Of a stretch of 64,000 bases of DNA, positions 1,944-14,940 are shown in pieces. Position 1 is the stretch's first letter. Each line of letters begins with the position of its first letter. Under the pieces are notes generated by a model. That model was given only the letters and a program-made list of their open reading frames with translations, searched no databases and had not been told where the DNA came from. The position numbers and the translations under genes are program-made. The stretch is taken from IMG/VR virus record IMGVR_UViG_3300022752_000015, positions 1-64,000 of that record; one strand, given 5' to 3'.

Positions 1944-1960
1944 TTTTCTTCTCCTTGATC

Positions 1961-1990
1961 AAGGTACCACATGAGGTGGAGGAATTTCAC
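1961..1990 (-). promoter_or_regulatory. early promoter GTGAAA-N18-TACCTT
   Basis: consensus match with extended -10 TG. Confidence 0.65.
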
Positions 1991-2313
1991 TCATCACCTT
2001 TCATTCTTTTTTCCACCATATCCAGGTAGAATGGAAGGGCACCTTGAGGAGGAGGTTCCACGGTGAATAAATTCCTTGCAACCTGATTGTAGTTAATCCT
2101 ACCTCCGGGCCTCCCCAATGTATCGAGGAAGGGATTGTAAAAATCACCCCATAAAACCTCCACCTGATTATCGGAGGTTTTTCTCACAATGGTTCCGGTG
2201 GAACTGGAGTAAAGGAACTTCACCATATCTCCAATTTTCCAATCAACCTCATCGAGTAGTTTTCCATCGAGGGTGAGGAGGGAGGAGATGAATACCGTGT
2301 TTATTTCACTCAT
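1987..2313 (-). CDS. KOW/SH3-like protein
   Basis: IGDMVKF...GTIV...VEVLW. Confidence 0.65.
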   Translation of the reverse strand: MSEINTVFISSLLTLDGKLLDEVDWKIGDMVKFLYSSSTGTIVRKTSDNQVEVLWGDFYNPFLDTLGRPGGRINYNQVARNLFTVEPPPQGALPFYLDMVEKRMKGDE

Positions 2314-2503
2314 GATATTTTTGAATATCCTCGGGGAGGATGATCTGATCGGGGCGGAAGAACAACTGTTTTCCACACGATAAAACGGTTAGGTAGGAAA
2401 CGATCCCATAGGGGTTTCTATTCACCTCCAGGATTATCCCCGCCCGGGGAGGTTCACCGAAGAATTTGGTGAAGATTAAATCTCCAATACTACTTTGATT
2501 CAC
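2306..2503 (-). CDS. KOW/SH3-like mini-protein
   Basis: IGDLIF...GIILEV...YLTVL. Confidence 0.7.
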   Translation of the reverse strand: MNQSSIGDLIFTKFFGEPPRAGIILEVNRNPYGIVSYLTVLSCGKQLFFRPDQIILPEDIQKYHE

Positions 2504-2714
2504 TTAGTATCTCCACGTTCCACCGATCCGCGATGAGATGGTGGTAGTTGATACCATCCTCACACAACAAGGTTACATTCAAACCATGGTTTCCATTGAA
2601 ACCTTCCACCGGAGGAACCTCTTCACATTCCAACAACAAACCGGTTATGGTACCGTTTTTCAGTGGAAAATCCTGGTATTTCCAGGTGAAACGAATCAGA
2701 TCACCCCGTTTCAC
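2490..2714 (-). CDS. KOW/SH3-like mini-protein
   Basis: MKRGDLIRF...GLLLE...VEIL. Confidence 0.7.
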   Translation of the reverse strand: MKRGDLIRFTWKYQDFPLKNGTITGLLLECEEVPPVEGFNGNHGLNVTLLCEDGINYHHLIADRWNVEILSESK

Positions 2715-2904
2715 TTAGTATCTCCACCGAACCTGGTGATACATAGTAACTCTTTCCCTCCTCGGGGATGATTACTTTAAGGTAACACATCTTACCGGAA
2801 ATCAATTCCTCATCCCGATATTCCTCAATGATTCCAACCGCTCCGCGGGGAGGAAGAAAACCAGGTAACTTACCTGTGAAAAGAACCAGATCACCGGGTT
2901 TCAT
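2701..2904 (-). CDS. KOW/SH3-like mini-protein
   Basis: MKPGDLVLF...GIIEE...YLKVI...VEIL. Confidence 0.75.
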   Translation of the reverse strand: MKPGDLVLFTGKLPGFLPPRGAVGIIEEYRDEELISGKMCYLKVIIPEEGKSYYVSPGSVEILSETG

Positions 2905-2911
2905 TGTGGGG

Positions 2912-3097
2912 TTATACCTTCACCAGTTCGTAGTTGTAGAACCAGGTTAACCTCTCACGGAATAGAACCCGATAACGATGTGATCCACCGTGATGTTCCT
3001 GTGAATCTGGATGAACCACTATTCCAAAACCAAGGATCTCGGATGGATTATCCCAATCCTCAACCTTCACAATATCTCCATTCTCAAGGTTGCTCAC
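2912..3097 (-). CDS. KOW/SH3-like mini-protein
   Basis: NGDIVKV...GIVV...YRVLF...ELVKV. Confidence 0.75.
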   Translation of the reverse strand: MSNLENGDIVKVEDWDNPSEILGFGIVVHPDSQEHHGGSHRYRVLFRERLTWFYNYELVKV

Positions 3098-3309
3098 CTT
3101 ATCACCTTAACCCTTTCATACCTCACCCACCCGATGGATTCACCGGTGATTATTTTGATGTATGGAACATCGATGTTGGAATAACATGAATCTATAATGA
3201 TTCCAATGTGATCCTGTGGAAAGGTTGAGGTATACGTACCTAATGGGTTAACTGAATCAAAGATGTGTAGGTTTCCAACGGTAGGTTGAACAAGGTTTCC
3301 AGGGTTCAC
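3094..3309 (-). CDS. KOW/SH3-like mini-protein
   Basis: MNPGNLV...GIII...IGWV. Confidence 0.75.
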   Translation of the reverse strand: MNPGNLVQPTVGNLHIFDSVNPLGTYTSTFPQDHIGIIIDSCYSNIDVPYIKIITGESIGWVRYERVKVIR

Positions 3310-3512
3310 TTCACCACCTCGATCTCATATTTCTCACCGATTCGATTGATTGGAATGTAGAAAATCTTCCCAGTTCCATTCTCAAGAACATCATAGAAAT
3401 CGGTGTTGTGTTGATGTGATTCACCTATAACAACACCACCGTTTCTCAACTCATCCCGGTGGGATTTGGAGGTGATAAAGATTCGTATCATATCTCCTGG
3501 AAACAATCTCAA
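3306..3512 (-). CDS. KOW/SH3-like mini-protein
   Basis: PGDMIRI...GVVI...YDVL...IEVV. Confidence 0.75.
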   Translation of the reverse strand: MRLFPGDMIRIFITSKSHRDELRNGGVVIGESHQHNTDFYDVLENGTGKIFYIPINRIGEKYEIEVVK

Positions 3513-3718
3513 GAGATCCTCTCGGTGAAGTTGTTCTCCATGAATTCCATCAACTCATTTCCCCATAGAACCTTATAGTAATCCCCAAATTCATCCCCGT
3601 TTCTATGAACACCAACCACCAAACCAGGCCCGGTGATCCTGAATTTTTCCTTATGGTTTCCAACCCAGGTATGAATTAGATCGGTACACATCCATAACTC
3701 ACCTGTGTTTGGTTTCAT
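3509..3718 (-). CDS. KOW/SH3-like mini-protein
   Basis: TGELW...GLVV...YKVLW. Confidence 0.7.
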   Translation of the reverse strand: MKPNTGELWMCTDLIHTWVGNHKEKFRITGPGLVVGVHRNGDEFGDYYKVLWGNELMEFMENNFTERIS

Positions 3719-3939
3719 GCCACCAACTCCAGTTTACCTCTTCCAATCCAACCGATTCCATGTGAGGTTAGAATCCTACACATCCCCCGGAAAAGAACCC
3801 CATTTTGGGTGGTTTGTAGAAGTATTCCAATCTCTCCAGGGGGTACAACCGGGCCATGGGAATCATGTGGAACATCGATATCCGGAACCAGTTGAAAATT
3901 GTTGAAAGAGTTAACTCGGATTAGATCACCTGGAATCAT
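3715..3939 (-). CDS. KOW/SH3-like mini-protein
   Basis: MIPGDLIRV...GILL...GIGWI...LELV. Confidence 0.75.
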   Translation of the reverse strand: MIPGDLIRVNSFNNFQLVPDIDVPHDSHGPVVPPGEIGILLQTTQNGVLFRGMCRILTSHGIGWIGRGKLELVA

Positions 3940-4184
3940 TGATGATCTTCCTTATCTAACCAAGAATCATAAACCCAACCCTTACCGTAACCAGGAAAAA
4001 GAATCAAGTGCATTTTTCCAACCGTTTCCAAAAATATCCCGCTGGAGTTGGTTGGAATCTCAAAACAATCGCTCATCTTATATGAGCGATATGGTGTGTT
4101 ACTCCGGTTCTCGTGAAAAACCCTGAGGAATTCCTTGGCCCAGGAGCATCTATGATGAACCACAAATATATCACCACGAATCAT
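3936..4184 (-). CDS. KOW/SH3-like mini-protein
   Basis: MIRGDIFVV...GIFL...GWV. Confidence 0.7.
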   Translation of the reverse strand: MIRGDIFVVHHRCSWAKEFLRVFHENRSNTPYRSYKMSDCFEIPTNSSGIFLETVGKMHLILFPGYGKGWVYDSWLDKEDHQ

Positions 4185-4380
4185 TGATTCTCTCCACCGC
4201 CCAACGGTTACTCCACAACCAAACCAACCCATTCGGGCCTAAAACATTGTATTCGGAGGGGCTCCATTCCAACCTTCTCCTTCCAATGAACAACCCAAAA
4301 AACGGTGGGGAATTCACTTCAGGGTTGTTGTGAAGTTTGAAAGGTTCACATATAACAGGATCTCCAACACACAACACCAT
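4171..4380 (-). CDS. KOW/SH3-like mini-protein
   Basis: VGDPV...GLFI...YNVL. Confidence 0.65.
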   Translation of the reverse strand: MVLCVGDPVICEPFKLHNNPEVNSPPFFGLFIGRRRLEWSPSEYNVLGPNGLVWLWSNRWAVERINDSW

Positions 4381-4391
4381 GGTTAAACTCC

Positions 4392-4421
4392 AATGTAAAC
4401 CATCCCATCCCGGTTTTACAC
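4392..4421 (-). promoter_or_regulatory. early promoter variant GTGTAA-N18-TACATT
   Basis: near-consensus with correct spacing, upstream of 4171..4380. Confidence 0.5.
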
Positions 4422-4679
4422 CGTGTGGAGTTCCAAATGGTTCTCACTCACCCACCCGAAAACCTCACCACCGAAAAACAGAACCTTACACTGATCCTCT
4501 TTGATTTCAATCACAACACCAATCGATCCGCTTGAAATTTTACCTATGAAACTCCGAGGAACTATGGATTCTCCAACCCAACGGATCTTCTCCGGGAAAT
4601 CGTAAATTCGGTGTAGATTTGTTGGGTGATTTTTAAGAGTTAAAATCCTTACAGAATCACCGGGTTTAAACCTGTTCAC
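4416..4679 (-). CDS. KOW/SH3-like mini-protein
   Basis: KPGDSVRI...GVVIEI...CKVLF...GWV..NHLEL; zero Ala. Confidence 0.75.
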   Translation of the reverse strand: MNRFKPGDSVRILTLKNHPTNLHRIYDFPEKIRWVGESIVPRSFIGKISSGSIGVVIEIKEDQCKVLFFGGEVFGWVSENHLELHTV

Positions 4680-4857
4680 CTGGAATCACCTCACACTTCC
4701 TCTCCACCCAATCCAATCCCCACCCACGGATCTCCTGTGTTCTTGGGTTAAGAACATGAACCAGGTTGATCTCCTTGTTTATCTCCAACACGAGGCAAAC
4801 ATCACCATCGAAATAATCCTCGATTACCACCATATCCCCGATCCGAAGTTTTCTCAC
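4666..4857 (-). CDS. KOW/SH3-like mini-protein
   Basis: RIGDMVVI...LVLEI...VHVL. Confidence 0.75.
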   Translation of the reverse strand: MRKLRIGDMVVIEDYFDGDVCLVLEINKEINLVHVLNPRTQEIRGWGLDWVERKCEVIPGEQV

Positions 4858-5060
4858 CCCAACACCTCAACCTCATCCTCCGGAACCAGGAGAATATCCT
4901 GAATTTCTCCATTGGTTTCCAACATCCGAATATTGAAAGATTTTTTATGGGTATCTCTGATTGGTGCCACGGGGCGAAAATGAAGTAGAACACCGGTGAT
5001 GGTGGGGAACTTCCACTTCTTGTGGAACCGAGTGATTCGAAGAAGATTTCCTATGTTCAT
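4854..5060 (-). CDS. KOW/SH3-like mini-protein
   Basis: MNIGNLLRI...GVLL...VEVL. Confidence 0.7.
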   Translation of the reverse strand: MNIGNLLRITRFHKKWKFPTITGVLLHFRPVAPIRDTHKKSFNIRMLETNGEIQDILLVPEDEVEVLG

Positions 5061-5314
5061 CTCACCAACTCCAGGATTTTCCTATCCGCCCAACCTACTC
5101 CACCGGGGGTTAACAACTTGATGTAGAAGAAATCCTTGTTCTCTGGAAACTCCGCGGTGAGTAGAACCAAACCTACATCCTTCCCATAGAAGAGTGTTTT
5201 CGTGGTGATTAGATAACCTCTATCATCCCAACAACGGGTTTCTCCTCCGTAAAGTTCAGCGGGATGGGGATCCCATGAATCCATTCGAAGTTTTACAATT
5301 GAACCTATGTTCAT
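5057..5314 (-). CDS. KOW/SH3-like mini-protein
   Basis: MNIGSIVKL...GLVLL...GGVGW...LELV. Confidence 0.75.
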   Translation of the reverse strand: MNIGSIVKLRMDSWDPHPAELYGGETRCWDDRGYLITTKTLFYGKDVGLVLLTAEFPENKDFFYIKLLTPGGVGWADRKILELVR

Positions 5315-5580
5315 CCCACCAACTCCAGATCACATCTTTTAATCCAACCTATCCCACCGGGGCACAATACCTTCACCCAAAAACTGGTGGGTAGAGAATC
5401 ATAAACATCATTGAGAATGTATCTTTGTTCCAGAATCACTCCCACCTCGGTGTAACGGAACCTCCCGGTGTGGTTCTTCCTGTAGATTGAAGTGAAATCA
5501 GGTGGATCATCCCAGAGGATTTTGTGATCCTCGTTACCTTCCATCTCGGGAATTAAACGAACTTGTGATCCGGGTTTCAC
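5311..5580 (-). CDS. KOW/SH3-like mini-protein
   Basis: GTG start (MKPGSQVRL)...GVILE...GGIGW...LELV. Confidence 0.75.
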   Translation of the reverse strand: MKPGSQVRLIPEMEGNEDHKILWDDPPDFTSIYRKNHTGRFRYTEVGVILEQRYILNDVYDSLPTSFWVKVLCPGGIGWIKRCDLELVG

Positions 5581-5828
5581 CTTTGAAACTCCTTCACCCA
5601 ACTCTGATGTGCCCAACCAACACCACGAGGGGTTAATAACTTCACATACTGGAGGTACCTATTCGTAATGATTCGAGTTTCAAGAACCAATCCTAGATCC
5701 GAAAAACCGAATGGAATATCGGTGGGGATGAGGTTATTGGTGATTGGATCCATTAGATCCGAATGGTATAACCAATGGGTGGTACCGGTATCTCCACCGT
5801 TCACACCAACAACATCACCGGGTTTCAC
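5577..5828 (-). CDS. KOW/SH3-like mini-protein
   Basis: GTG start (MKPGDVV)...GLVLE...GVGW. Confidence 0.75.
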   Translation of the reverse strand: MKPGDVVGVNGGDTGTTHWLYHSDLMDPITNNLIPTDIPFGFSDLGLVLETRIITNRYLQYVKLLTPRGVGWAHQSWVKEFQR

Positions 5829-6016
5829 TGGAACTTCTCCAACCATCTAACCGGAAACATTCTTATCCTATCACCCAATCCCTTTACATATTCACCGGGA
5901 AGATTGGGGGTGGTGTACCTCTCACCGAGGATAACCACCAACATTCCATGGAGATAATCATCCCGTGGATGGGCACCCGGTGGAACTGAAACTCGATATA
6001 GATCCCCTTTTCTCAT
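5825..6016 (-). CDS. KOW/SH3-like mini-protein
   Basis: MRKGDLYRV...GMLVVIL...WLEKF. Confidence 0.7.
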   Translation of the reverse strand: MRKGDLYRVSVPPGAHPRDDYLHGMLVVILGERYTTPNLPGEYVKGLGDRIRMFPVRWLEKFQ

Positions 6017-6216
6017 ACGATCTTCCTGATGGTATCACTGGGATGATGAACCAGTTTATCACCTCTTAGAACCACCCACCAATCAGCGGAACCGTTTTCA
6101 CCTGAACTCCTGTATCCATCATCCCAAAGTGATTCACGGATGATTATCCCGGTTGAGTGCGGATCATCCTCATCAAGAAACTCCGGAAGGATTTCAACAA
6201 CATCTCCGGGTTTCAT
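6013..6216 (-). CDS. KOW/SH3-like mini-protein
   Basis: MKPGDVVEI...GIII...WVVL. Confidence 0.75.
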   Translation of the reverse strand: MKPGDVVEILPEFLDEDDPHSTGIIIRESLWDDGYRSSGENGSADWWVVLRGDKLVHHPSDTIRKIV

Positions 6217-6416
6217 GGTGCCTCCGAGAGGAGTGTTAGGTTTTCCCATATGAAAGGAATGAAATCTTCGTTCCAGAAAACGATACAATCACACTCACCT
6301 GCAACCTGATCTCCCCATTCATCCAGTGGAACCTTATCACTCCAGAATATCCCCACGCGGGGTTCATGTGGTTCCAGAAAATCCGCGGAGATTAAAACCA
6401 GATCTCCGGGTTTCAC
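6213..6416 (-). CDS. KOW/SH3-like mini-protein
   Basis: MKPGDLVLI...GIF...CIVFW. Confidence 0.75.
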   Translation of the reverse strand: MKPGDLVLISADFLEPHEPRVGIFWSDKVPLDEWGDQVAGECDCIVFWNEDFIPFIWENLTLLSEAP

Positions 6417-6598
6417 TGGAGATTCCTAAAGATATTTCTGAATCCATTCATCTCCCACCTCACGGTGGAGTTTCCGAGTAGAACCTCAACCATGTTCCAG
6501 GAAACACGGAGAACCACACCGATCTCAGGGGTGTAACGGTGGATAACCAGGGATCCAGGTACCACCTGGTTCACACTGAGGATATCATCGTTTCTCAC
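6413..6598 (-). CDS. KOW/SH3-like mini-protein
   Basis: PGSLV...GVVL...VEVL. Confidence 0.7.
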   Translation of the reverse strand: MRNDDILSVNQVVPGSLVIHRYTPEIGVVLRVSWNMVEVLLGNSTVRWEMNGFRNIFRNLQ

Positions 6599-6801
6599 CG
6601 GATCACCTCTATGTAGTATGATTCCACTGGGTAACGGGTTATCCTCCCATCGGGATCGATAACCTTTATTTTTTCGTTTTCACCACCGATCTCAAAGTTT
6701 TCGTGTTCCAGGTAGATCCCAAACTTCCAACCGGTTTCACGGTAAACCGGATCCAATAGATCGATTCGGTGGATGATTTTGAGAAGAGAACCGGGTTTCA
6801 T
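6595..6801 (-). CDS. KOW/SH3-like mini-protein
   Basis: MKPGSLLKI...GIYL...IKVI...IEVI. Confidence 0.75.
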   Translation of the reverse strand: MKPGSLLKIIHRIDLLDPVYRETGWKFGIYLEHENFEIGGENEKIKVIDPDGRITRYPVESYYIEVIR

Positions 6802-7007
6802 TTTGGAAGTGTTCCGATGGGTGGTGTGGTTGAGATGTTGTGTTCCTGATATTCCAGTTTCTCACCGGTGAGTGGATTGAGAACCACATACCATGGTGTG
6901 GAGGAGTAGGTAGGTTGGAAAATATCGGAGATGATTACCGGTGTGTGGGGGTGAATGTATAGGGAACCGATGATAAAAACCAGATCTCCGAGTTGAATAT
7001 CCTTCAT
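6798..7007 (-). CDS. KOW/SH3-like mini-protein
   Basis: LGDLVFI...VII...YVVL. Confidence 0.7.
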   Translation of the reverse strand: MKDIQLGDLVFIIGSLYIHPHTPVIISDIFQPTYSSTPWYVVLNPLTGEKLEYQEHNISTTPPIGTLPK

Positions 7008-7219
7008 TCCACCACCTTCACGTTTCCTACATAACACCAACCAATATTTTCTCCACTGATAACCTTAACATCGGAGCGATAAACATCAACAACCAAACCG
7101 ATTCCGGTTAGAAGCCCGTGGTATTTCCTGGTTCCAGGAGGAACCGATCCGAGTGGGGATGAGAATAACTTGGAGGAACTTCCTGGGGAATTGTTGGTTA
7201 CAATATCACCGGGCCTCAT
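7004..7219 (-). CDS. KOW/SH3-like mini-protein, close paralog of 10234..10467
   Basis: MRPGDIV; shared SKLFSSP and N(I/V)GWC motifs. Confidence 0.75.
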   Translation of the reverse strand: MRPGDIVTNNSPGSSSKLFSSPLGSVPPGTRKYHGLLTGIGLVVDVYRSDVKVISGENIGWCYVGNVKVVE

Positions 7220-7397
7220 TGATGATTTTCCAGTTGGGTGTTACCATTTCGGTTTGAACCTCACCGTTGTGAAGAATGGTACACCAGTGTTCGTGGTTGA
7301 AGATGATTGGAGTTTCCAGTACCATTCCGATGTAGGTGTGCCATGAACAGGTTCCGGAACCCCACTTTTTAAATTCCACAAGATCACCTACATTCAT
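7206..7397 (-). CDS. KOW/SH3-like mini-protein
   Basis: MNVGDLVEF...GMVLE. Confidence 0.75.
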   Translation of the reverse strand: MNVGDLVEFKKWGSGTCSWHTYIGMVLETPIIFNHEHWCTILHNGEVQTEMVTPNWKIINEAR

Positions 7398-7602
7398 TCC
7401 AGATCTCCTCCAGGTAGTTCCAGTTTACCCATCCGATCTTCCCGTTGTAGAGAACCTTGATCCAGGTACCATTCGGAGGTGAAACGATCAAGAGGGATGA
7501 TCCGATTGGAATTCCATCATCCGGTAGGTGTTTGTGAACCTTATTCACCGTGGAATAGAAGTTGGTGAAACAAAGGTTTTTGGCAAGTGAACCGGGAAGC
7601 AT
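7384..7602 (-). CDS. KOW/SH3-like mini-protein, leaderless
   Basis: MLPGSL...IKVL...IGWV...LEEI. Confidence 0.75.
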   Translation of the reverse strand: MLPGSLAKNLCFTNFYSTVNKVHKHLPDDGIPIGSSLLIVSPPNGTWIKVLYNGKIGWVNWNYLEEIWNECR

Positions 7603-7608
7603 GTTTCA

Positions 7609-7638
7609 AGTATATCATCCCACGGTGGGGAATTTCAC
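7609..7638 (-). promoter_or_regulatory. early promoter GTGAAA-N18-TATACT, leaderless ATG 6 nt downstream
   Basis: consensus match. Confidence 0.8.
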
Positions 7639-7640
7639 TG

Positions 7641-7814
7641 TTACCCCACCAGGTGTTTTTCGTTTTTGAATTGAGTGAGAACCTCCCATAGGAGTTGTGG
7701 AAGGGAATCCTGGATGTGAAGGTATGATGAGTAGGAACAACACCACACCGGGCCGGGAGAAATAACTCCAGGTTTCTCTTTCCAGATTTTTACCGAACGT
7801 AGGAACTTAAACAT
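7641..7814 (-). CDS. hypothetical protein (57 aa)
   Basis: fills the intergenic gap on the coding strand. Confidence 0.35.
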   Translation of the reverse strand: MFKFLRSVKIWKEKPGVISPGPVWCCSYSSYLHIQDSLPQLLWEVLTQFKNEKHLVG

Positions 7815-7815
7815 T

Positions 7816-8181: not shown

Positions 8182-8182
8182 C

Positions 8183-8425: not shown

Positions 8426-8431
8426 GATTCA

Positions 8432-9311: not shown

Positions 9312-9315
9312 GATG

Positions 9316-9519
9316 TTATCCTATCCTATCGAGGTGGGGATTTTCACCGGGGAGGGAGATGTAGTGATCAGAGATCATTTGTTTCCTACCGGTGTGGAGG
9401 AGAACGGTGAAGAAACGGTGATCCATTGAGATATCGTTGTGTTCCTCGATGATTATCCCGAGTGTGGGGGAGATCATCCTCTGGGGATTGGTGTAGAGGA
9501 TGAGTTGCCCGATTCTCAC
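9316..9519 (-). CDS. KOW/SH3-like mini-protein
   Basis: MRIGQLI...GIII...FTVLL; paralog of 10061..10237. Confidence 0.7.
   Translation of the reverse strand: MRIGQLILYTNPQRMISPTLGIIIEEHNDISMDHRFFTVLLHTGRKQMISDHYISLPGENPHLDRIG
9318..9347 (-). promoter_or_regulatory. early promoter GTGAAA-N18-TAGGAT, leaderless ATG 6 nt downstream
   Basis: consensus match. Confidence 0.8.
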
Positions 9520-9704
9520 TAGATCTCCTGGAGGTCTGATTCTCGGCAGTGAAGAATTCCACGATCTGGAAACAATACCTTCCAGTGTGGGAACGGATCA
9601 TTTCCACGGAATTCGTAGGGGATGTGTTCGAGGATGATCCCAACATCACCGGGAAGATCCATTTGGAATCGGTACCTCCATACCACCATGTTACCAACCC
9701 TCAT
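9519..9704 (-). CDS. KOW/SH3-like mini-protein
   Basis: MRVGNMVVW...GIILE...WKVLF...DLQEI. Confidence 0.75.
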   Translation of the reverse strand: MRVGNMVVWRYRFQMDLPGDVGIILEHIPYEFRGNDPFPHWKVLFPDRGILHCRESDLQEI

Positions 9705-9891
9705 CCGTGATCCTCCTTGATCCATGTGGGTTTAACCACCTCATACTACCATCACCCAATAAAACTTTACATACATTGGAAATTGGATCAGGATCCTCAT
9801 GGATATCAATGATCAACCCAAGGATATAAATTATTTCCTTGGTGATGGGATTCCTTCCGTTCCTAAATTCTCTAAGTTCACCAACCTTCAT
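9691..9891 (-). CDS. KOW/SH3-like mini-protein
   Basis: MKVGEL...GLII...CKVLL. Confidence 0.75.
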   Translation of the reverse strand: MKVGELREFRNGRNPITKEIIYILGLIIDIHEDPDPISNVCKVLLGDGSMRWLNPHGSRRITDEGW

Positions 9892-10064
9892 TCCAACACC
9901 TGGAATAATTCATCTTTTAAGTGGATTGAGATCCTCCTGATTTTATCTCCATCGAGAATAACCAATGAATACCTCTCAATATCAACCTGAAGTATTAGTT
10001 GAATATCGGTATTCCATCCACTTATCCTTTTACTGGATGTTTTTATTAGATCTCCACGTTTCAC
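9888..10064 (-). CDS. KOW/SH3-like mini-protein (58 aa, not in ORF track)
   Basis: GTG start MKRGDLIK; 4-nt overlaps on both sides. Confidence 0.7.
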   Translation of the reverse strand: MKRGDLIKTSSKRISGWNTDIQLILQVDIERYSLVILDGDKIRRISIHLKDELFQVLE

Positions 10065-10237
10065 TGTAGAAAATCCAGGTAGTGGGTGGAGATTAGTTTA
10101 ACAATACCGTTTTCCAGTAGAACATTGTAGAATTGTTGATCCAGGGATATTCCAAGTTTTTCCTGGATGATTATCCCGATGAGGGGTTGAGGAATTCTAG
10201 TATTATTTCGGTAACGAACCAAGGAACCGGGTTTCAT
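10061..10237 (-). CDS. KOW/SH3-like mini-protein
   Basis: MKPGSLVRY...GIII...YNVLL. Confidence 0.75.
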   Translation of the reverse strand: MKPGSLVRYRNNTRIPQPLIGIIIQEKLGISLDQQFYNVLLENGIVKLISTHYLDFLQ

Positions 10238-10467
10238 TCCACCACTCGGAGGTTCCCCGCGAAACACCAACCAACATTTCCATCACAGGTGATCTTCACC
10301 TCGGAACCATGTTGTTCCAGAACCATACCAACCCCGGATAGATACCCGGTGGTGAAACGTGAAACATAACCATTGTTCCCAACCGTGATTGGAGAGGAAA
10401 ATAGTTTGGATCTGGAATTGGTTCCAAGGTTGGTTACCAAAGTTCCGGGGAGATATGTGGTGTTCAT
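10234..10467 (-). CDS. KOW/SH3-like mini-protein
   Basis: PGTLV...GMVLE...NVGWC...LRVV. Confidence 0.75.
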   Translation of the reverse strand: MNTTYLPGTLVTNLGTNSRSKLFSSPITVGNNGYVSRFTTGYLSGVGMVLEQHGSEVKITCDGNVGWCFAGNLRVVE

Positions 10468-10673
10468 GGTGTTGTTAGTAATCGGTTTTTTATCCAACCA
10501 ACCTTACCACGGTTCGTTAGGATTTTTGAGGATGATTTTCTGGATTCAATGATGATAACAATCTCGGGGGCTCTTATCCAATCCACTGCCACGCATCCTA
10601 GTGGAATTTCATCCATACACACATCCCAAACATAGGTTTGAACTGAACAGAGGTATAGTTCATTGGGTTTCAT
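10464..10673 (-). CDS. KOW/SH3-like mini-protein
   Basis: MKPNEL...VIIIE...KIL...VGWI. Confidence 0.7.
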   Translation of the reverse strand: MKPNELYLCSVQTYVWDVCMDEIPLGCVAVDWIRAPEIVIIIESRKSSSKILTNRGKVGWIKNRLLTTP

Positions 10674-10885
10674 TGGTGAACCTTGTACATGTATGAAACT
10701 TGGCTCCACCCAATTTTCTCCCCAATTAACCATTGAACGAAACCGTTTTGGGAGGGGGTGATGATGATCCCGGTGGAGGGTGGAATTTCCGGTGGGAATG
10801 TTGGGCCTGAGTATAGATCAGGATGTACCGGAAAGAATTGAAGTACCACCGAGGATTTAACCAGGGTTCCAGGGGAATATTTCAT
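10670..10885 (-). CDS. KOW/SH3-like mini-protein
   Basis: PGTLV...GIII...IGW. Confidence 0.7.
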   Translation of the reverse strand: MKYSPGTLVKSSVVLQFFPVHPDLYSGPTFPPEIPPSTGIIITPSQNGFVQWLIGEKIGWSQVSYMYKVHQ

Positions 10886-11055
10886 TGGAGAACCTTGAAG
10901 TTCCTTTTGAGGAAGAAGTAGGAGTAGATGGAGGTGGTTCCATTGTTCCACATGATTTCACATGCTCCGGTGGGGGATTCGGAGAGGAGAAGGGCGATAC
11001 CGGGTGGAACATGGTGGTGAGGTTCGATTGAGATGAGAAGGGAACCAGGAACCAT
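10882..11055 (-). CDS. KOW/SH3-like mini-protein (not in ORF track)
   Basis: MVPGSLLI...EIMWNNG...FKVL; 4-nt overlap. Confidence 0.6.
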   Translation of the reverse strand: MVPGSLLISIEPHHHVPPGIALLLSESPTGACEIMWNNGTTSIYSYFFLKRNFKVLQ

Positions 11056-11067
11056 GGTTATATGGTA

Positions 11068-11241
11068 TCATGTGGAATGTGGGTTTTTCACCACGGTGAA
11101 GTTTTTACTGATCCAATTGTATCCCCAACGATCCATGGTTTGGAGCCTGGGGTTGAAGAGGATAACAATGTTGAGGTGTTTGTGTACCTCGAGAACAAGG
11201 TTGGGATCTTCGTAGAAAATAACGAGATCACCGGGGCTCAA
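11068..11241 (-). CDS. KOW/SH3-like mini-protein (not in ORF track)
   Basis: TTG start MSPGDLVIF...LVLEV. Confidence 0.6.
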   Translation of the reverse strand: MSPGDLVIFYEDPNLVLEVHKHLNIVILFNPRLQTMDRWGYNWISKNFTVVKNPHST

Positions 11242-11414
11242 TGAACCACCTCGAACATCCGAGAGATGAAATCAACAGAGAATCGTGATGTGGTTCCGTT
11301 GTGGGCCCACATGATATCGAACCACCCGTTGGTTTCCTGGGAGATGATAACCGCGAGGGTTTCGTTGGGAAACTCACCATTGATGTGAAATCGTATCAGA
11401 TCTCCCCTCTTCAC
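11238..11414 (-). CDS. KOW/SH3-like mini-protein (not in ORF track)
   Basis: GTG start MKRGDLIRF...FDIMW...FEVV. Confidence 0.7.
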   Translation of the reverse strand: MKRGDLIRFHINGEFPNETLAVIISQETNGWFDIMWAHNGTTSRFSVDFISRMFEVVH

Positions 11415-11617
11415 AACACCACCTCGAACAAATCGCGGATAACATCATCACCAATTCTACGGGTGATTCCATTGGATAGGTGAACGAGGTAGTTAACCGT
11501 GTTCCACCTCTCATCGATGAGAACCTCGAGAATCAATCCTGATGTTGGATTTCCGTTGCGAACCTGGTAATCGTTGGGTAGGAGAAGTGTTCCGATGGGA
11601 AGTGGATCAGGTTTCAC
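11411..11617 (-). CDS. KOW/SH3-like mini-protein
   Basis: IGTLL...GLILEV...YLVHL...FEVV. Confidence 0.75.
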   Translation of the reverse strand: MKPDPLPIGTLLLPNDYQVRNGNPTSGLILEVLIDERWNTVNYLVHLSNGITRRIGDDVIRDLFEVVL

Positions 11618-11846
11618 TGAGAACCTCTATGTCATCCGAGATTTCACCATCCATCAACCAGGATTTTCCAATCACACCACCGTGGGAGGTGAAGAGAACC
11701 TTGAGTTGGTTGTACTTGGAACCACGGTGCTTGGGGATGAAATCGATTACGATTCCGAACCAATCACCACAAACGTTATCGAATAGTTGGTGTTGATATT
11801 CACCGGGAGAGGTGGGTTTGTTTCGAATCAAAGAACCGATTTTCAC
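11607..11846 (-). CDS. KOW/SH3-like mini-protein
   Basis: MKIGSLI...GIVI...LKVLF...IEVL. Confidence 0.75.
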   Translation of the reverse strand: MKIGSLIRNKPTSPGEYQHQLFDNVCGDWFGIVIDFIPKHRGSKYNQLKVLFTSHGGVIGKSWLMDGEISDDIEVLSET

Positions 11847-12079
11847 CTGAGAACCTCGAGAATTTCTTCCATCTCATCATTCAAGAGGAGTGCCCTCATC
11901 ACCAGGTTATCGGGTGTAACGAGGGCCTCGATGGTGGTGTAGTGAGTTGTGTAGTGGGATGGTGGAGTTACCTTGAGAACCACCGCGATCCAATCGAAGT
12001 CCTGGGAGATGATTTCCCTGAAGATAGCCACACCGGATGTTTGGTATCGATTCCTTCGAAATAGATCACCAGGTTTCAT
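11843..12079 (-). CDS. KOW/SH3-like mini-protein
   Basis: MKPGDLF...VVLKV...LEVL. Confidence 0.75.
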   Translation of the reverse strand: MKPGDLFRRNRYQTSGVAIFREIISQDFDWIAVVLKVTPPSHYTTHYTTIEALVTPDNLVMRALLLNDEMEEILEVLR

Positions 12080-12360
12080 AGCTCCTCTTCAGGAATCACT
12101 CGAAAATCATGGGTGTGGTACCCGAATCGAACCAATCCATCGTTCCCCACGAAGATCCCATGGCCCTTCATCCCTGGGATTTCACCTAGGAAAAGTATTG
12201 GATTTCCGGGGCGAAGTGGGTACAACCTTTCATCCTGGGGAGGTGGAGTAAATACCACCAAAAATCCTGAGGTAATTCCTCTAGGGAAATTAACGGGATT
12301 TTTTAGGTGTTCATCCAGGGGTATCCATGTTTCAACCTGGTGTTTTTGGTAGATTGCCAT
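12076..12360 (-). CDS. hypothetical protein with SH3-like C-terminal half
   Basis: LFLGEIPGMKGHGIFV...GYHTHDFRVI; GAGG SD. Confidence 0.65.
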   Translation of the reverse strand: MAIYQKHQVETWIPLDEHLKNPVNFPRGITSGFLVVFTPPPQDERLYPLRPGNPILFLGEIPGMKGHGIFVGNDGLVRFGYHTHDFRVIPEEEL

Positions 12361-12619
12361 TTTGTGCCTCTCTGAGGATTTGTTCCACAGGTTTTTCACG
12401 TTCTCCGCGGAGATCTCGTTGGGTATCCCTCCATGGTAAGGAACCTCTTTCCCACCTGCGAACCTGATCCGGAGATTCTAGGAGTTTGATTGAGAAAACC
12501 TCGGATCCTCGGTTATCAACCTCATCGGTGAGGTGTTTGAACCCGATCATCTCGGCTTCTTTTTCATTTTCACATTCCACCAGGAGATCGGTGAGGAATG
12601 AGACTCGATAGATGGCCAT
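12332..12619 (-). CDS. hypothetical protein, paralog of 8183..8425
   Basis: YRVSFLTD...ERGSLPWR. Confidence 0.75.
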   Translation of the reverse strand: MAIYRVSFLTDLLVECENEKEAEMIGFKHLTDEVDNRGSEVFSIKLLESPDQVRRWERGSLPWRDTQRDLRGEREKPVEQILREAQNGNLPKTPG

Positions 12620-12627
12620 GGTGTTGT

Positions 12628-12656
12628 ATACTAATCCATTTTTAGTGGGTTTTCAC
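12628..12656 (-). promoter_or_regulatory. early promoter GTGAAA-N17-TAGTAT
   Basis: consensus match upstream of 12332..12619. Confidence 0.7.
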
Positions 12657-12862
12657 CGAATGATTTCAAGGAATTCGTTGGGGATCCACCCGTGGGCATT
12701 GGGGAATGCCACCTGGGAACGGTAAGAGTGTTGTTCCGTTATGATTCCGAGTGAACCATAGGGGATAATCAGGGATGAATTGATTCGATTGTTGAAGAGT
12801 TCCGTGTAGGGTATGGCACCACCGGTGTTACAAACCCTGATCAAGGTTCCTACTGGATACAT
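12653..12862 (-). CDS. KOW/SH3-like mini-protein
   Basis: VGTLIRV...GII...GWI...LEII. Confidence 0.7.
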   Translation of the reverse strand: MYPVGTLIRVCNTGGAIPYTELFNNRINSSLIIPYGSLGIITEQHSYRSQVAFPNAHGWIPNEFLEIIR

Positions 12863-13080
12863 GGGTGAATTTCCTGGAGATCCTTGGAATCGAAGGTGTG
12901 AACCATGGAGGTTGTTGGAACGAGACACCGGCAGAAGTACATGGTGTACTTGAATTCAACATCGATGATGAGGAGTGGTTGATCGTAGTAGGGTGAGGTG
13001 CGGTACTTCGTGAGCCTCACCATGGAACCCCTGTTGAATGGTGGGTTCACTGTTGAACCTCCTTCATGCCAACAGTACAA
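12850..13080 (-). CDS. KOW/SH3-like mini-protein (start uncertain)
   Basis: RGSMVRL...LLIIDV...DLQEI. Confidence 0.6.
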   Translation of the reverse strand: MYCWHEGGSTVNPPFNRGSMVRLTKYRTSPYYDQPLLIIDVEFKYTMYFCRCLVPTTSMVHTFDSKDLQEIHPCIQ

Positions 13081-13262
13081 ATATAGCCCACTCGCTGATC
13101 GGAGAGAAGCACCTTGGCCCAGTTATCTCGATGTGGAATCTCAGACTGGAGGACGAGAATGGGTTGATTCTCCAGCACGCGGACCGAATCTCCGTAGCGA
13201 AGATCCGGATAGAAGTTCACGTATGAACGAGGAGGAACTACGATGAGAGATCCTGGTTTCAT
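13047..13262 (-). CDS. SH3-like mini-protein
   Basis: MKPGSLI...WAKVL...VGYI. Confidence 0.7.
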   Translation of the reverse strand: MKPGSLIVVPPRSYVNFYPDLRYGDSVRVLENQPILVLQSEIPHRDNWAKVLLSDQRVGYICTVGMKEVQQ

Positions 13263-13510
13263 GATCCTCGACGATATTGGGATGCAGGGATGAGGAAACG
13301 GGCCACACACCAACCAATGTGACCGGTGGAGGAGAGGACCTTTGCATAGGTGATCTGCTCTCGGCCGATGGCGTCGGGAGTCTCCAGGAGTTCCACGATG
13401 ATTCCGAGCTGATACCTGCTGAAGATCGTGGAGGAATAGTAGAGGGATGGATCGGTGCAGAGATCCACGTAGCTTGGTGTGGTCACCATGTTACCAACCC
13501 TGAGGTCCAT
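13259..13510 (-). CDS. KOW/SH3-like mini-protein, leaderless
   Basis: RVGNMV...GIIVEL...AKVL...IGWC. Confidence 0.75.
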   Translation of the reverse strand: MDLRVGNMVTTPSYVDLCTDPSLYYSSTIFSRYQLGIIVELLETPDAIGREQITYAKVLSSTGHIGWCVARFLIPASQYRRGS

Positions 13511-13516
13511 GGTTTC

Positions 13517-13546
13517 ATTGTATCATGGGACGTGAGGGGATTTCAC
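13517..13546 (-). promoter_or_regulatory. early promoter GTGAAA-N18-TACAAT, leaderless ATG 6 nt downstream
   Basis: consensus match with extended -10 TG. Confidence 0.8.
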
Positions 13547-13620
13547 GGGATGAAAAACGACCGGGAGTGTTTAGTTCCCGGTCGAAAACTAGGTTAAGTT
13601 TTTAGTTGTGATCAGATCAA

Positions 13621-14472
13621 TCAGATCGATATTCCATAACGAGAAGACAAGTAAGACAAGGTAGCGGCTCTTTCTGAGCTATCGTGTTCCTTCTTGTAGT
13701 AGATTATCTCAGCGATTTTGCCATCGAAGGATCCATTTCCCATCGTTACTTTGTTAACGGGGGATGGAAGAGCTGGAACTGCTCCTGAATTAAATGAATC
13801 AGTGATTGTTTGTGACACACCATTTACTGCTTGGAAGGCACTTCCTACAGTCCCGCCTTGCGAGATTTTTAGCTCTACAATTCTGGCAGTAGAATCTATA
13901 GAATAATTGTAAAGATTAGCCGCGTAACCCGTCTCCAAACCTAAACGTTTTGTGCCCCATTGATCTGCCAAAAATAGCGAAATCATGCTTTGCTGCTGGT
14001 AAGTACCTAATGTACCGTATGTGAATATCCTTTTGGGATCGCCCACATAATTGTCGATGGAAATAACCGCGTATATAGTTAATGCAGAATCTCCAGATAG
14101 GTATGCAGCAGGTGATGTCATAGCTAGGTATGAGCCATAAAATAATCCCCCAGGTCCTGATGATACGAAACTAACTGCCGGTTGATTATTGAAAGCTGCT
14201 ACTGAGGATAGGTAAGTAGGTGGTTGCATAGGTGCTGCAAATTCGCCTGGTACTGTTAGTACATCACCAGAAGCTGAACGATCAGCCCAGCTGTTGACTG
14301 CTGCACCGTTAGAAGAGCCTGCATCATCCGCTCTAAACCACGCGCCGAGCAGTGTCATTGGAGGCGATCCACCACCTCCACCGCCACCACCACCCGATGA
14401 TGTGATGCTTATACCACCACCAATTCCTGTAAATTTGATGGATCCGCCGGATCCTTTTGATACTATGGCCAT
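13621..14472 (-). CDS. LamG/concanavalin-like domain virion-associated protein with poly-Gly linker
   Basis: AWFRADD...VNSWADRS...FNNQPAVSF...FDGKIAEIIYY...YLSSRYGI. Confidence 0.7.
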   Translation of the reverse strand: MAIVSKGSGGSIKFTGIGGGISITSSGGGGGGGGGSPPMTLLGAWFRADDAGSSNGAAVNSWADRSASGDVLTVPGEFAAPMQPPTYLSSVAAFNNQPAVSFVSSGPGGLFYGSYLAMTSPAAYLSGDSALTIYAVISIDNYVGDPKRIFTYGTLGTYQQQSMISLFLADQWGTKRLGLETGYAANLYNYSIDSTARIVELKISQGGTVGSAFQAVNGVSQTITDSFNSGAVPALPSPVNKVTMGNGSFDGKIAEIIYYKKEHDSSERAATLSYLSSRYGISI

Positions 14473-14482
14473 AAAATCTCCA

Positions 14483-14521
14483 GATTGAACAACCTAAATT
14501 TGTTCAATCAAATATAAATAT
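14483..14521 (-). promoter_or_regulatory. 10-bp hairpin (GATTGAACAA/TTGTTCAATC) and ATATTTA candidate late-promoter motif
   Basis: perfect inverted repeat just upstream of the GGAG SD of 13621..14472. Confidence 0.45.
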
Positions 14522-14542
14522 CAGCAAAATTCAATGTTGAAT

Positions 14543-14743
14543 TCAATTTGACTCAACTCTTTCCATGTAATCCTCGTAGAACTGGTGTGTTTTTCCATCG
14601 GGTGTAAGGACCTCCACGATGTTGTCGAGGAATCGATCGGAGAAGAAGGTTCGTAGCACCACGTAGACCTGAGGTTCATCAGAGAACTTTACGAGTTCGC
14701 CGAGGAGGAGAGGTTCTCTCCATGTTTTAGGGGAGCGCTTCAT
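14543..14743 (-). CDS. KOW/SH3-like mini-protein
   Basis: LGELVKF...YVVL...VEVLTPDG. Confidence 0.7.
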   Translation of the reverse strand: MKRSPKTWREPLLLGELVKFSDEPQVYVVLRTFFSDRFLDNIVEVLTPDGKTHQFYEDYMERVESN

Positions 14744-14928
14744 TTTACAAGGTCCATGTAGTTTTCGGTTTCTTCCACTATTAAACCATCCTCGCAGAGT
14801 ACATACCACCAACGGTGTTGTTGATCACCCCACCAGTTGGTACGAGGAGATTCGTATAGAATTATACCAGTGAGAGGTTTTCCTTCACGACCTTCTTGAC
14901 GTCCCATGACCAAATCACCTGGTTTCAT
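14740..14928 (-). CDS. KOW/SH3-like mini-protein
   Basis: MKPGDLV...GIIL...WYVL. Confidence 0.75.
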   Translation of the reverse strand: MKPGDLVMGRQEGREGKPLTGIILYESPRTNWWGDQQHRWWYVLCEDGLIVEETENYMDLVK

Positions 14929-14940
14929 TTCTTCGATAAT

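Follow-up and report, generated by a model that had tools for sequence, protein, structure and literature searches.

A tandem array of about 45 tiny, predicted SH3-like barrel genes in a freshwater jumbo phage: a possible battery of small binding modules

Organisation of the array

The window considered here, the whole 64-kb stretch of DNA that was analysed, is the start of a 212.8-kb IMG/VR contig from a widespread freshwater lake jumbo phage, whose metagenomic range takes in lakes from at least 15 studies. About a fifth of it is given over to a minus-strand array, between positions 2306 and 14928, of about 45 genes for tiny proteins (57-89 aa) predicted to be SH3-like barrels. A first HMM, seeded on 20 clear members and then grown, matched 37 stop-to-stop segments at E<=0.02 among 907 six-frame segments, all of them on the minus strand, with zero matches in the other frames and the first plus-strand match at E=0.53. 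A second (A2), which additionally includes 108 independent database homologues, gave 47 matches in the window at E<0.01. Of these, 46 fall on the minus strand and the other is a genuine plus-strand ORF (27391-27687); in no reading frame of the window did a family-profile match fall outside a genuine ORF. Within 2306-14928, 43 genes are profile-supported, and two more (4171-4380 and 6798-7007) carry the motifs with weak pairwise support. A first-pass annotation had described 40 or more consecutive ORFs beginning at 1987. The number stands, but the run is interrupted at 7641-9311, 12076-12619 and 13621-14472, and ORF 1987-2376 is unsupported as a member (profile E=0.85). Four members shorter than 60 aa that it had pointed out (9888-10064, 10882-11055, 11068-11241 and 11238-11414) are present and belong to the family.

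All four blocks of family genes lie on the minus strand. Block 1 (2306-7602) holds 25 genes of 61-89 aa, 23 of them profile-supported at E<0.01 and two motif-only, with starts, set by a 4-nt or 14-nt overlap with the stop of the preceding gene, at 2503, 2714, 2904, 3097, 3309, 3512, 3718, 3939, 4184, 4380, 4679, 4857, 5060, 5314, 5580, 5828, 6016, 6216, 6416, 6598, 6801, 7007, 7219, 7397 and 7602. It is followed by a minus-strand insert (7641-9311) whose ORFs (7641-7814, 7816-8181, 8183-8425, 8617-8799 and 8796-9311) have no family, Pfam or PHROG match. Block 2 (9316-12079) comprises 14 genes of 57-79 aa, all profile-supported, starting at 9519, 9704, 9891, 10064, 10237, 10467, 10673, 10885, 11055, 11241, 11414, 11617, 11846 and 12079. 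Next comes a minus-strand non-family pair, 12076-12399 and 12332-12619 (12076-12656 with the promoter-like element upstream), the second of which is a paralogue of insert ORF 8183-8425 (E=3e-22). Block 3 (12653-13550, including its promoter-like element) has four genes, with starts at 12862, 13050, 13262 and 13510. Beyond it but still within the array, a minus-strand non-family gene (13621-14472) encodes a 283-aa protein with a Gly-rich N-terminus, and Block 4 (14543-14928) adds two profile-supported genes starting at 14743 and 14928.

Further copies had been proposed at 16.3-19.9, 23.7 and 27.4 kb, and the A2 HMM bears out the first and last of these locations. Three minus-strand members (16311-16505, 17432-17677 and 17682-17924; E=3e-5, 1e-6 and 2e-12) surround an EamA-like membrane gene (17014-17424), with a weak candidate between them at 16507-16719 (minus strand, E=0.15 with the first HMM); another minus-strand member, at 19758-19994, is weakly supported (E=0.004); and the lone plus-strand member, of 98 aa, lies at 27391-27687 (E=5.4e-7). 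The ORF at 23.7 kb (23667-23855) is unsupported (profile E=13).

Motifs, gene packing and a promoter-like element

The motif set given in the first-pass annotation is recovered across the members as described: M-K-P-G-D-L-V, G-(I/L)-(I/V)-(L/I)-E, K-V-L, G-x-(I/V)-G-W and, near the C-terminal end, L-E. Members differ chiefly in two loops, the first, between the first two motifs, running to 6-43 residues (median 16) and the second to 6-19 aa. Every member is single-domain and starts at the M-K-P-G-D-L-V strand, with no signal peptide, enzyme, anchor or partner domain. Their pI has a median of 6.05, with 22 of 45 below pI 6 and eight above pI 8, and the family motif set contains no conserved positively charged motif.

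Packing is tight. The true start of many genes lies inside the longest ORF, in a 4-nt ATGA, GTGA or TTGA overlap, and a 4-nt overlap is found at 28 of the 41 gene junctions; a Shine-Dalgarno core precedes 29 of 45 starts, against a background of 17%. The terminal Leu-Glu-Val codons (CTGGAGGTG) double as the Shine-Dalgarno sequence of the following gene, and some stop codons sit inside the Gly-Asp codons of the next. The genes of the array are thus translationally coupled, and the use of tail codons as a neighbour's ribosome-binding site is a clear example of a gene-packing constraint shaping protein termini.

The array also carries an element, GTGAAA-N18-TATACT-N6-ATG, with a sigma70-like layout that ends 6 nt upstream of the ATG and matches nine times where 0.21 matches are expected. 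On the minus strand it heads Block 1 (7600-7642, repeat family D1, conserved in relatives L085, L079 and L088), occurs twice in the non-family insert (8423-8465 and 9309-9351), lies as an exact pattern match within the C-terminal tail codons of 11068-11241, ahead of 10882-11055 (11053-11091), precedes the non-family pair (12617-12656) and heads Block 3 (13508-13550); a seventh copy (200-242, minus strand) stands ahead of a gene truncated at the contig start. The element is conserved in L085, L079, L088 and L095 and does not occur in 1.4 Mb of DnaE-centred loci, with no consensus RNA structure found for it. Among the sampled loci it is specific to the arrays, and it splits the array into sub-operons, each of which it heads. 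If it is a promoter, first cistrons would be leaderless or nearly so. A generic scan for sigma70 promoters and terminators found no enrichment, and three true RNA libraries contain fragments of 125-242 nt at a contig depth of 2-3, a level at which DNA carry-over is possible and transcription is unproven. The case for early expression of the array, from a conserved, array-specific, sigma70-like element, is circumstantial.

Predicted fold and nearest relatives

Two members were modelled with AlphaFold2. The product of 7206-7397 (minus strand, 63 aa, short loop; pLDDT 89.4) is predicted to form six beta strands and matches Tudor, SH3, ribosomal uL19-like and WYL barrels (Z about 7, TM 0.6-0.8), with VIA-align returning the 53BP1 Tudor domain, ribosomal SH3-like proteins and Spindlin at Z<=7.5. 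In the product of 5057-5314 (minus strand, 85 aa; pLDDT 93.0, pTM 0.83) the long loop 1 is predicted to fold into an ordered hairpin with extra strands rather than stay floppy; its PDB neighbours in Foldseek are SH3 domains, and the ESM Atlas places it beside viral hypothetical clusters (TM 0.82) and beside bacterial SH3_3 proteins (TM 0.70). Both models match SH3, Tudor or SH3b folds, so the shared fold expected of the family is borne out in one short-loop and one long-loop member, as is the proposed constant scaffold with a loop of variable length. Members are thus predicted to be small SH3/Tudor-like beta-barrels. Structural matches are nevertheless generic (Foldseek E>=0.009, Z about 7), and the fold therefore says little about function.

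Profile comparisons lead to the same neighbourhood. A PDB profile search retrieved SH3 domains only (best E=5.7e-4), the long database matches of the family are bacterial SH3_3 repeat proteins, and hhalign of family profile A1 against 147 SH3_3 repeats gave 94.3% probability and E=9.8e-8 over just 25 columns, covering strands 3-5 with the GW motif. With hmmscan against SH3_3 (PF08239) no scanned window member reaches the curated cut-off, and five of 147 family members match weakly (best E=1.4e-4). On sequence comparison, bacterial SH3b (SH3_3) is the nearest family. The KOW half of the earlier "KOW/SH3-like" label fares worse than the SH3-like half, which two confident models uphold: KOW (PF00467) has no match at E<=1 among 10 window members, bar one KOWx_SPT5 match at E=0.11, and does not feature among the families that 147 members match at E<=0.01. 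Of those 147, one has a weak CarD_TRCF_RID match and two have MSSS matches; no member reaches Pfam, PHROG or NCBIfam thresholds, and tblastn against 50,697 deposited phage genomes found no homologue. The family is, to judge from these searches, previously undescribed. Language-model neighbours, small SH3-like accessory subunits that stand alone (such as PetP, NdhO, SipA/CRR42-like proteins and the FTR variable chain), score below 0.9 and serve as leads only.

The likeness to bacterial SH3b domains (SH3_3, SH3_4, GW) extends from the predicted small beta-barrel (Atlas TM 0.70) to the pattern of the second half, hydrophobic-x-V-hydrophobic and G-x-x-G-W before the last strand, and to the long loop 1, the counterpart of SH3b's extended RT loop. 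Unlike them, the phage domain is the entire protein, lacking signal peptide, enzyme or anchor; the family falls under the Pfam threshold; and its copies are 40-plus separate genes, not repeats inside one cell-wall protein. A cell-wall-targeting SH3b module was considered and rejected, the proteins being single-domain (57-89 aa) and free of any secretion signal or lytic or anchoring fusion. The usual ligand of bacterial SH3b domains is the cell wall, outside the cell, and not cytoplasmic proteins, an observation that counts against reading the phage barrels as cytoplasmic protein binders.

The same wall and carbohydrate binding would suit virion-associated proteins, whether packaged internally and ejected or serving as small decoration or adhesion modules, and two neighbours point the same way: the 283-aa product of 13621-14472 has a weak match to phrog_10356, a "virion structural protein" (E=9.3e-7), and an endolysin gene (19973-20794) adjoins the array region. 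We consider such a role quite unlikely, given that signal peptide, anchoring domain and any recognisable cleavage or targeting extension are all absent, that the conserved N-terminus belongs to strand 1 in both models, that 147 members yield no match to a structural PHROG, and that the array has its own promoter-like class, missing from the other sampled loci.

Alternatively, the barrels could bind nucleic acids or ligands in the manner of KOW, Sm, Tudor or WYL-like domains, modulating transcription, translation or RNA decay, or acting as sponges for signalling molecules. Among the top Foldseek and VIA matches are the PafBC and DriD WYL domains, ribosomal SH3-like proteins, the Tudor domain of PcrA/UvrD, which contacts RNA polymerase, and Rof/YaeO, and the CarD_TRCF_RID and MSSS matches lean in the same direction. 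Against this, structural matches stay at the generic-fold level, a KOW match and a conserved positively charged motif are lacking, and a median pI of 6.05 with eight of 45 members above 8 is unlike general nucleic-acid binders; on balance the idea seems unlikely.

An old expansion with exchangeable cassettes

An exhaustive search at E<=1e-3 found 449 representatives, most of them 55-100 aa long, and every homologue whose contig was fetched is located in an array. There are 44 copies in L095, a divergent relative on a 281-kb scaffold, 24 in the fetched part of a sister genome and 14-16 on short contigs; the 44 copies in so distant a relative indicate that the expansion is old and conserved. Comparison of the paralogues disclosed no recent copies, the closest pair being 45% identical in protein. 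Long DNA repeats are absent, and no direct repeat in 1-20000 is longer than the start-region and promoter-like motifs of 30-47 nt. Recent "accordion" amplification is rejected on both counts, as is a diversity-generating retroelement target, for which the direct repeats in 1-20000 offer no template/variable repeat pair.

Pooled dN/dS against the sister genome is 0.20 (908 codons, 13 diverged orthologue pairs), neighbouring genes give 0.10 and the Block 4 genes 0.06-0.07, so each paralogue is maintained by purifying selection. The array is a lineage-specific multigene expansion of a jumbo phage, its paralogues being tandem, conserved and under selection. "Hypervariable" is not supported if it is taken to mean that diversification is still going on: the paralogues diverged anciently (<=45% identity), and orthologue differences are not enriched in the loop (9.9% in loop 1, 7.7% in the core; p=0.38). 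Arrays do tolerate insertions such as TnpB, and cassette loss, as might leftovers of neutral or selfish duplication or artefacts of gene calling. That the genes are functionless is highly improbable, and largely refuted by the dN/dS of 0.20; purifying selection across 13 diverged pairs is joined by two confident fold predictions, a 44-copy array in a divergent relative, profile matches confined to one frame and one strand, and conserved translational coupling.

What does change is which genes are present. Differences from the sister genome are whole-gene swaps, insertions and losses with breakpoints at gene boundaries, rather than hypermutated loops. Unrelated family members occupy the equivalent of 9685-10880, and the 10880 junction recurs in contigs from other lakes; 12078-12470 shares about 69% DNA identity with the 7.9-8.4 kb module as it stands in the sister genome; and unrelated DNA stands in place of 13621-14472. 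In relatives, contigs break at varied places within the array.

Comparison with known systems and proposed function

Paralogues arrayed in tandem, with strain-to-strain differences in content, recall the poxvirus ankyrin and ASFV MGF genes, terminal multigene families tied to host interaction, although here the virus is bacterial, the single-domain proteins are far smaller and there is no sign of recent amplification. Long dense runs of small phage genes of unknown function, presumed to redirect the host, are familiar from the early host-takeover clusters of SPO1 (gp37-60), T5 (pre-early genes) and T4 (early ORFs), but those encode unrelated proteins with experimentally proven timing, and ours a single family. 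Single, small, often acidic SH3-like barrels also include Rof/YaeO (an inhibitor of Rho), PetP, NdhO, SipA and NifZ, structural or language-model neighbours of the phage family that each act by binding one larger protein partner; they differ in being single-copy cellular genes, with no significant sequence similarity to the phage proteins. Bacillus phage G offers a lineage-specific expansion of a tiny domain in a jumbo phage, with about 35 zinc-ribbon genes (Iyer et al. 2021, PMC7824862). Both cases involve dozens of very small paralogous domains whose role is a matter of guesswork, but the present array has a predicted SH3-like fold, belongs to a different, uncultured clade, reaches a larger copy number, is conserved across relatives and tightly coupled, and has its own promoter-like element.

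Our leading interpretation, to which we assign a probability of roughly 0.4, is that the array is an old lineage-specific expansion of stand-alone SH3b/Tudor-like barrels in an uncultured clade of freshwater jumbo phages, serving as cytoplasmic protein-binding modules. That related phages hold equally large arrays suggests a battery of small binding modules, and cytoplasmic action is suggested by the absence of signal peptide and partner domain and by the mostly acidic or neutral character of the proteins. The barrels would act in the cytoplasm, each showing a distinct loop surface to a distinct partner in host or phage, and would serve host takeover or counter-defence by adapting or inhibiting that partner; cassette turnover would follow differences between host strains. 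Binders or decoys for takeover or anti-defence remain the most plausible reading of the family.

More speculatively, and with considerable doubt, the arrays may make up a set of interchangeable SH3-like binder modules, equivalent in a phage to a library for poly-immunity or counter-defence, with standardised ends and a dedicated promoter class. Each cassette would then neutralise or hijack a different host factor, uniform gene ends (the M-K-P-G-D start and the L-E-V tail with its Shine-Dalgarno sequence) would allow swaps between co-circulating phages, and the dedicated promoter class, with its leaderless first cistrons, would switch on the whole repertoire together.

Conclusions

A family invisible to Pfam, PHROGs and NCBIfam that nonetheless fills about a fifth of 64 kb in a phage encountered in at least 15 studies is a sizeable piece of viral dark matter, and one whose predicted fold, gene model, mode of evolution and candidate regulatory element can now be described. 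If the barrels are target-specific binders, the arrays would represent a library of very small binding scaffolds that nature has assembled and evolution has tested, and a large untapped source of phage proteins that inhibit or redirect bacterial machinery.

A conserved array of small genes

Between roughly 2.3 and 14.9 kb, the minus strand of the window is a near-unbroken series of short ORFs, which the analysis shows to be a battery of some 45 distinct single-domain SH3-like barrels that is conserved, selected and co-regulated. A first HMM was seeded with 20 clear members and run iteratively on the 907 stop-to-stop segments (35 aa or longer) of all six frames; it converged at 37 matches (E<=0.02), all on the minus strand, with the first plus-strand segment at E=0.53. 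A second HMM, enlarged with 108 independent homologues from public metagenomes, gave 47 matches in the window at E<0.01, 46 of them on the minus strand and one on the plus. Within 2306-14928 (-), 43 genes have profile support and two more (4171-4380 and 6798-7007) carry the motifs with weak pairwise support, bearing out the run of consecutive related mini-ORFs described in the first-pass annotation, together with all four ORFs below 60 aa that it had listed as missed members. Its limits were drawn too widely: the claimed start of the array, 1987-2376, lacked support from the first HMM, and among the outlying copies proposed, the plus-strand ORF at 27391-27687 stands through the second HMM while 23667-23855 is without support.

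Non-members break the array at 7641-9311, 12076-12619 and 13621-14472. The genes at 8183-8425 and 12332-12619 (-) are paralogues (E=3e-22) whose proteins begin M-x-Y-R-V-x-F, each lying directly 3' of a copy of a promoter-like element and each with a partner gene (7816-8181 and 12076-12399, respectively); the copy of the 7.9-8.4 kb module in the sister genome, IMGVR_UViG_3300044641_009805, has ~69% DNA identity with window positions 12078-12470, suggesting that a two-gene module was duplicated within the array. Neither Pfam nor PHROG matches this module. The protein encoded mid-array by 13621-14472 (-) is 283 aa long, has an N-terminal poly-Gly run and weakly matches a PHROG 'virion structural protein' (E=9.3e-7); unrelated sequence takes its place in the sister genome. 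That the family members themselves are virion or ejected proteins we judge quite unlikely. A 429-aa ORF on the opposite strand, 15012-16301 (+), splits the array. The ORF ends in an AgmX/PglI domain (myxo_SS_tail, 75.6 bits; cut-off 40) similar to the terminal part of GltG, a gliding-motility protein. Across 185,579 species genomes, the sole match to the ORF is in a Polyangiaceae (Myxococcota) MAG at 52% identity, a possible clue to the host; the GC content of the MAG locus is 62%, against 36-48% in the phage (~45% around the ORF).

A stand-alone SH3-like barrel

Members are 57-89 aa long and share M-K-P-G-D-L-V, G-(I/L)-(I/V)-(L/I)-E, K-V-L, G-x-(I/V)-G-W and an L-E near the end, with a first loop of 6-43 residues (median 16) between the first two motifs and a second of 6-19. 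Alanine is extremely rare, at 1.0-1.4% of family residues in 2306-14928; in eight large proteins that the window also encodes, the figure is 6.7%. AlphaFold2 models built on the family alignment were all-beta and confident both for a 63-aa member (7206-7397, pLDDT 89.4) and for an 85-aa long-loop member (5057-5314, pLDDT 93.0, pTM 0.83), in which the long loop adds strands. The shorter model has as neighbours PafBC/DriD WYL domains, ribosomal SH3-like proteins, the Tudor domains of PcrA/UvrD and 53BP1, Spindlin and Rof/YaeO (Foldseek E>=0.05, TM 0.5-0.7; VIA-align Z up to 7.5), and also matches uncharacterised AlphaFold DB clusters (TM up to 0.81) and small uncharacterised phage proteins. For the longer model, the PDB offers canonical SH3 domains as neighbours and the ESM Atlas viral hypothetical clusters (TM 0.82), bacterial SH3_3 proteins (TM 0.70, rmsd 2.0) and NifZ and CRR42-like proteins. 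Both models match SH3-like barrels, and their scores place the family in that class and nothing finer.

Profile searches point the same way. From the PDB, the family profile retrieved only SH3 domains (best, Pex13 SH3, E=5.7e-4), and an exhaustive search of 1.84 billion representatives returned 449 proteins at E<=1e-3, the majority stand-alone, 55-100 aa long and aligned end to end. The few long homologues, bacterial proteins that combine SH3_3/SH3_4/GW repeats with lytic domains, align at profile positions 35-63, and hhalign against 147 such repeats gave 94% probability over strands 3-5. SH3b units of this kind are, by contrast, repeats within longer proteins. The KOW label attached by the first-pass annotation lacks support, as 0 of 147 members match KOW and the family is SH3b-like instead. 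No member reached the Pfam cut-off (SH3_3 was weakly matched by 5 of 147), none of 147 matched a PHROG, NCBIfam gave nothing at threshold and tblastn of two members against 50,697 phage genomes found none; the family is thus undescribed, and closer to SH3b than to KOW. One metagenomic homologue, P0038 (129 aa), is a single chain of two family domains and shows that neighbouring cistrons have fused in one relative or more; a second candidate fusion, the 'multi-stretch' match P0068 (298 aa), was rejected as a low-complexity repeat.

Gene packing and a promoter-like element

Many longest-ORF starts proved wrong, the start that gives an N-terminal M-K-P-G-D-L-V usually falling within a 4-nt overlap with the upstream stop. 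Such overlaps occur at 28 of 41 junctions (ATGA 15, GTGA 11, TTGA 2), and seven further junctions overlap by 14 nt, placing the upstream stop in codons 4-5 of the next gene; in four of these seven the stop is the TGA within GGTGAT, the Gly-Asp codons. Start codons are ATG (27), GTG (16) and TTG (2). A Shine-Dalgarno core lies 4-16 nt 5' of 29 of 45 starts, against a background of 17%, and is often formed by the CTGGAGGTG codons of the previous gene's Leu-Glu-Val tail. Because codons at gene ends serve two uses, part of the conservation at both termini is a by-product of gene packing.

A repeat search uncovered an element of ~45 nt immediately 5' of seven start codons, all on the minus strand (238-200, 7638-7600, 8461-8423, 9347-9309, 11091-11053, 12656-12617 and 13546-13508). 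Its consensus runs GGTGAAA, a C-rich spacer (CCCCACC), (G/T)GA-TAnnAT, six bases and ATG, and the pattern GTGAAA-N18-TAnnAT-N6-ATG has nine matches at one mismatch or fewer, where 0.21 are expected. One-mismatch copies at 16962-17000 (-), before an internal ATG of ORF 16716-17000, and 30680-30718 (-), before gene 30101-30682, indicate that the element may serve a few genes outside the array too. Its copies recur at orthologous sites of the sister genome and of three arrays from more distant relatives (L079, L088 and L095), always on the array's coding strand, and the element is absent from 78 DnaE-centred loci (1.4 Mb; ~0.5 chance matches expected). An RNA-structure reading was rejected, since RNAalifold found 0 pairs, and the element is accordingly conserved at the level of DNA sequence.

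The layout is that of a putative sigma70-type promoter with an extended -10 box. As the ATG starts 7 nt after that box, we infer that each unit would open with a leaderless or near-leaderless cistron. A generic sigma70/terminator scan gave no enrichment; the specific element surfaced through the repeat search. Units delimited by its copies hold 4, 5 (plus two non-members), 9 and 25 family genes, and two further units are non-family. Early transcription would be consistent with a promoter of host type. In three true RNA libraries the array is represented by one or two contig fragments each (125-242 nt, contig depth 2-3), for which DNA carry-over is possible.

Cassette exchange and selection

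The closest paralogues, 7004-7219 and 10234-10467, are 45% identical and most pairs 12-30%, and no direct DNA repeat in 1-20000 exceeds 47 nt, so the expansion is old. Recent amplification is rejected on both counts, and a DGR on the lack of longer repeats over that stretch. Best-match pairs offset by a constant eight genes (7004-7219/10234-10467 and 7384-7602/10670-10885) suggest an old block duplication. GC skew of the plus strand switches sign twice, near 10 kb and near 18 kb. At third codon positions, read on the coding strand, family genes have a GC skew of +0.02 at 2300-7600 and of -0.28 at 9300-14900, strand unchanged; different origins of the array halves or a replication-related switch could account for this contrast.

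The sister genome, with a 99% identical DnaE, is collinear with window positions 6549-27418 at 79-96% identity. In it, 9685-10880 and 13588-14409 are replaced, 14928-16310 is absent and additional genes lie near 7.2 and 7.8 kb. Cassette breakpoints are gene boundaries, save one 63 nt into the 283-aa gene, and contigs from other lakes share the junction at 10880. Five neighbouring genes (10885-11846) are nucleotide-identical in the two genomes amid flanking genes at 70-90%, a recombination mosaic. Across 13 diverged orthologue pairs (908 codons), pooled dN/dS is 0.20 (range 0.03-0.54), against 0.10 for neighbouring non-family genes; that the family genes are without function is very improbable. 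Diversification focused on the loops, which the first-pass annotation had envisaged, is not seen between orthologues, where amino-acid differences are 9.9% in loop 1 and 7.7% in the core (p=0.38).

Related arrays and the phage that carries them

Every homologue whose contig was retrieved lies within an array of small same-strand genes. A syntenic phage (L079/L081) has its array after trypsin-like, FGE-sulfatase and EamA genes; L082 and L087 are additional arrays, and L088 and L089, the latter from the window's own metagenome, hold 13 and 16 matches in ~3.5 kb. A 281-kb ENA scaffold (L095) has 44 matches on one strand over ~14 kb, into which a TnpB gene is inserted on the opposite strand, and shares DNA identity with the window in patches only (69-83%). 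Three contigs of the L095 phage terminate at differing points within the array, and the window's contig and the sister genome likewise end in or beside theirs; it is evidently at the arrays that assemblies break, the expected outcome for regions that vary between strains. IS605/TnpB-type genes (Cas12f1-like_TNB, OrfB_IS605) occur in or beside relatives' arrays (L095-L097, 7010-8095 (-); L082, 3372-5199, an insertion that also includes a resolvase).

As anchors in IMG/VR, the 283-aa gene, an 85-aa member and a 166-aa ORF recovered the window's own contig only, and the family alignment offered no stretch conserved enough to serve. EamA and FGE-sulfatase anchors retrieved only the sister genome and three distant loci (0-3 members), and the 78 DnaE-centred loci gave one stray family match. 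The window's FGE-sulfatase-domain protein (23868-24800 (-)) is kept beside arrays in relatives.

The source is an uncultured jumbo phage widespread in fresh water. At least 15 studies of lakes and freshwater have yielded metagenomes with near-identical DNA; a megablast search with the array found nothing in 50,697 phage records, so no deposited phage is alike at DNA level, and the closest DnaE in GenBank phages is ~30% identical to the DnaE-like polymerase at 50909-54502. That polymerase is 100% identical to its counterpart on IMGVR_UViG_3300022752_000015, a contig of 212,804 bp whose coordinates coincide with those of the window, which is thus its opening 64 kb. Other window genes encode thymidylate synthase, nucleotide-sugar enzymes, a flap endonuclease, an endolysin and isocitrate lyase (31432-32676 (-), E=1.8e-100), with no tRNA genes in the window. 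A 668-aa protein (20966-22972 (+)) has a sub-threshold bactofilin match (27.0 bits, cut-off 27.9), and its gene contains internally repeated DNA at ~21.2-21.9 kb (multiple off-diagonal blastn matches).

Novelty and proposed role

The SH3-like fold is known; new here are the family itself, its copy number and clade-wide conservation, and also the cassette-exchange mode, the dual-use coding at junctions and the array-specific promoter-like element. Phage G, with ~35 zinc ribbons, is a precedent for lineage-specific expansion of a tiny domain in jumbo phages (PMC7824862), set against 43-45 SH3-like copies here and 44 in a relative.

The proteins would act in the cytoplasm, as they have no signal peptide or anchor, and would do so by binding, being too small and too varied for catalysis and having a fold that is a classic interaction module. 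Binding of nucleic acid or ligands is unlikely: the median pI is 6.05, with 8 of 45 members above 8, and charges that are for the most part acidic or neutral favour proteins over nucleic acids as partners. Rof (on Rho), PetP, NdhO and SipA, stand-alone SH3-like proteins that each grip one larger partner, are precedents for the proposed mode. Cassette turnover, tolerance of insertions and the surrounding unannotated small genes are in keeping with accessory functions in host interaction, and we give a probability of about 0.4 to the reading that the battery serves such a function, for example in host takeover or counter-defence.
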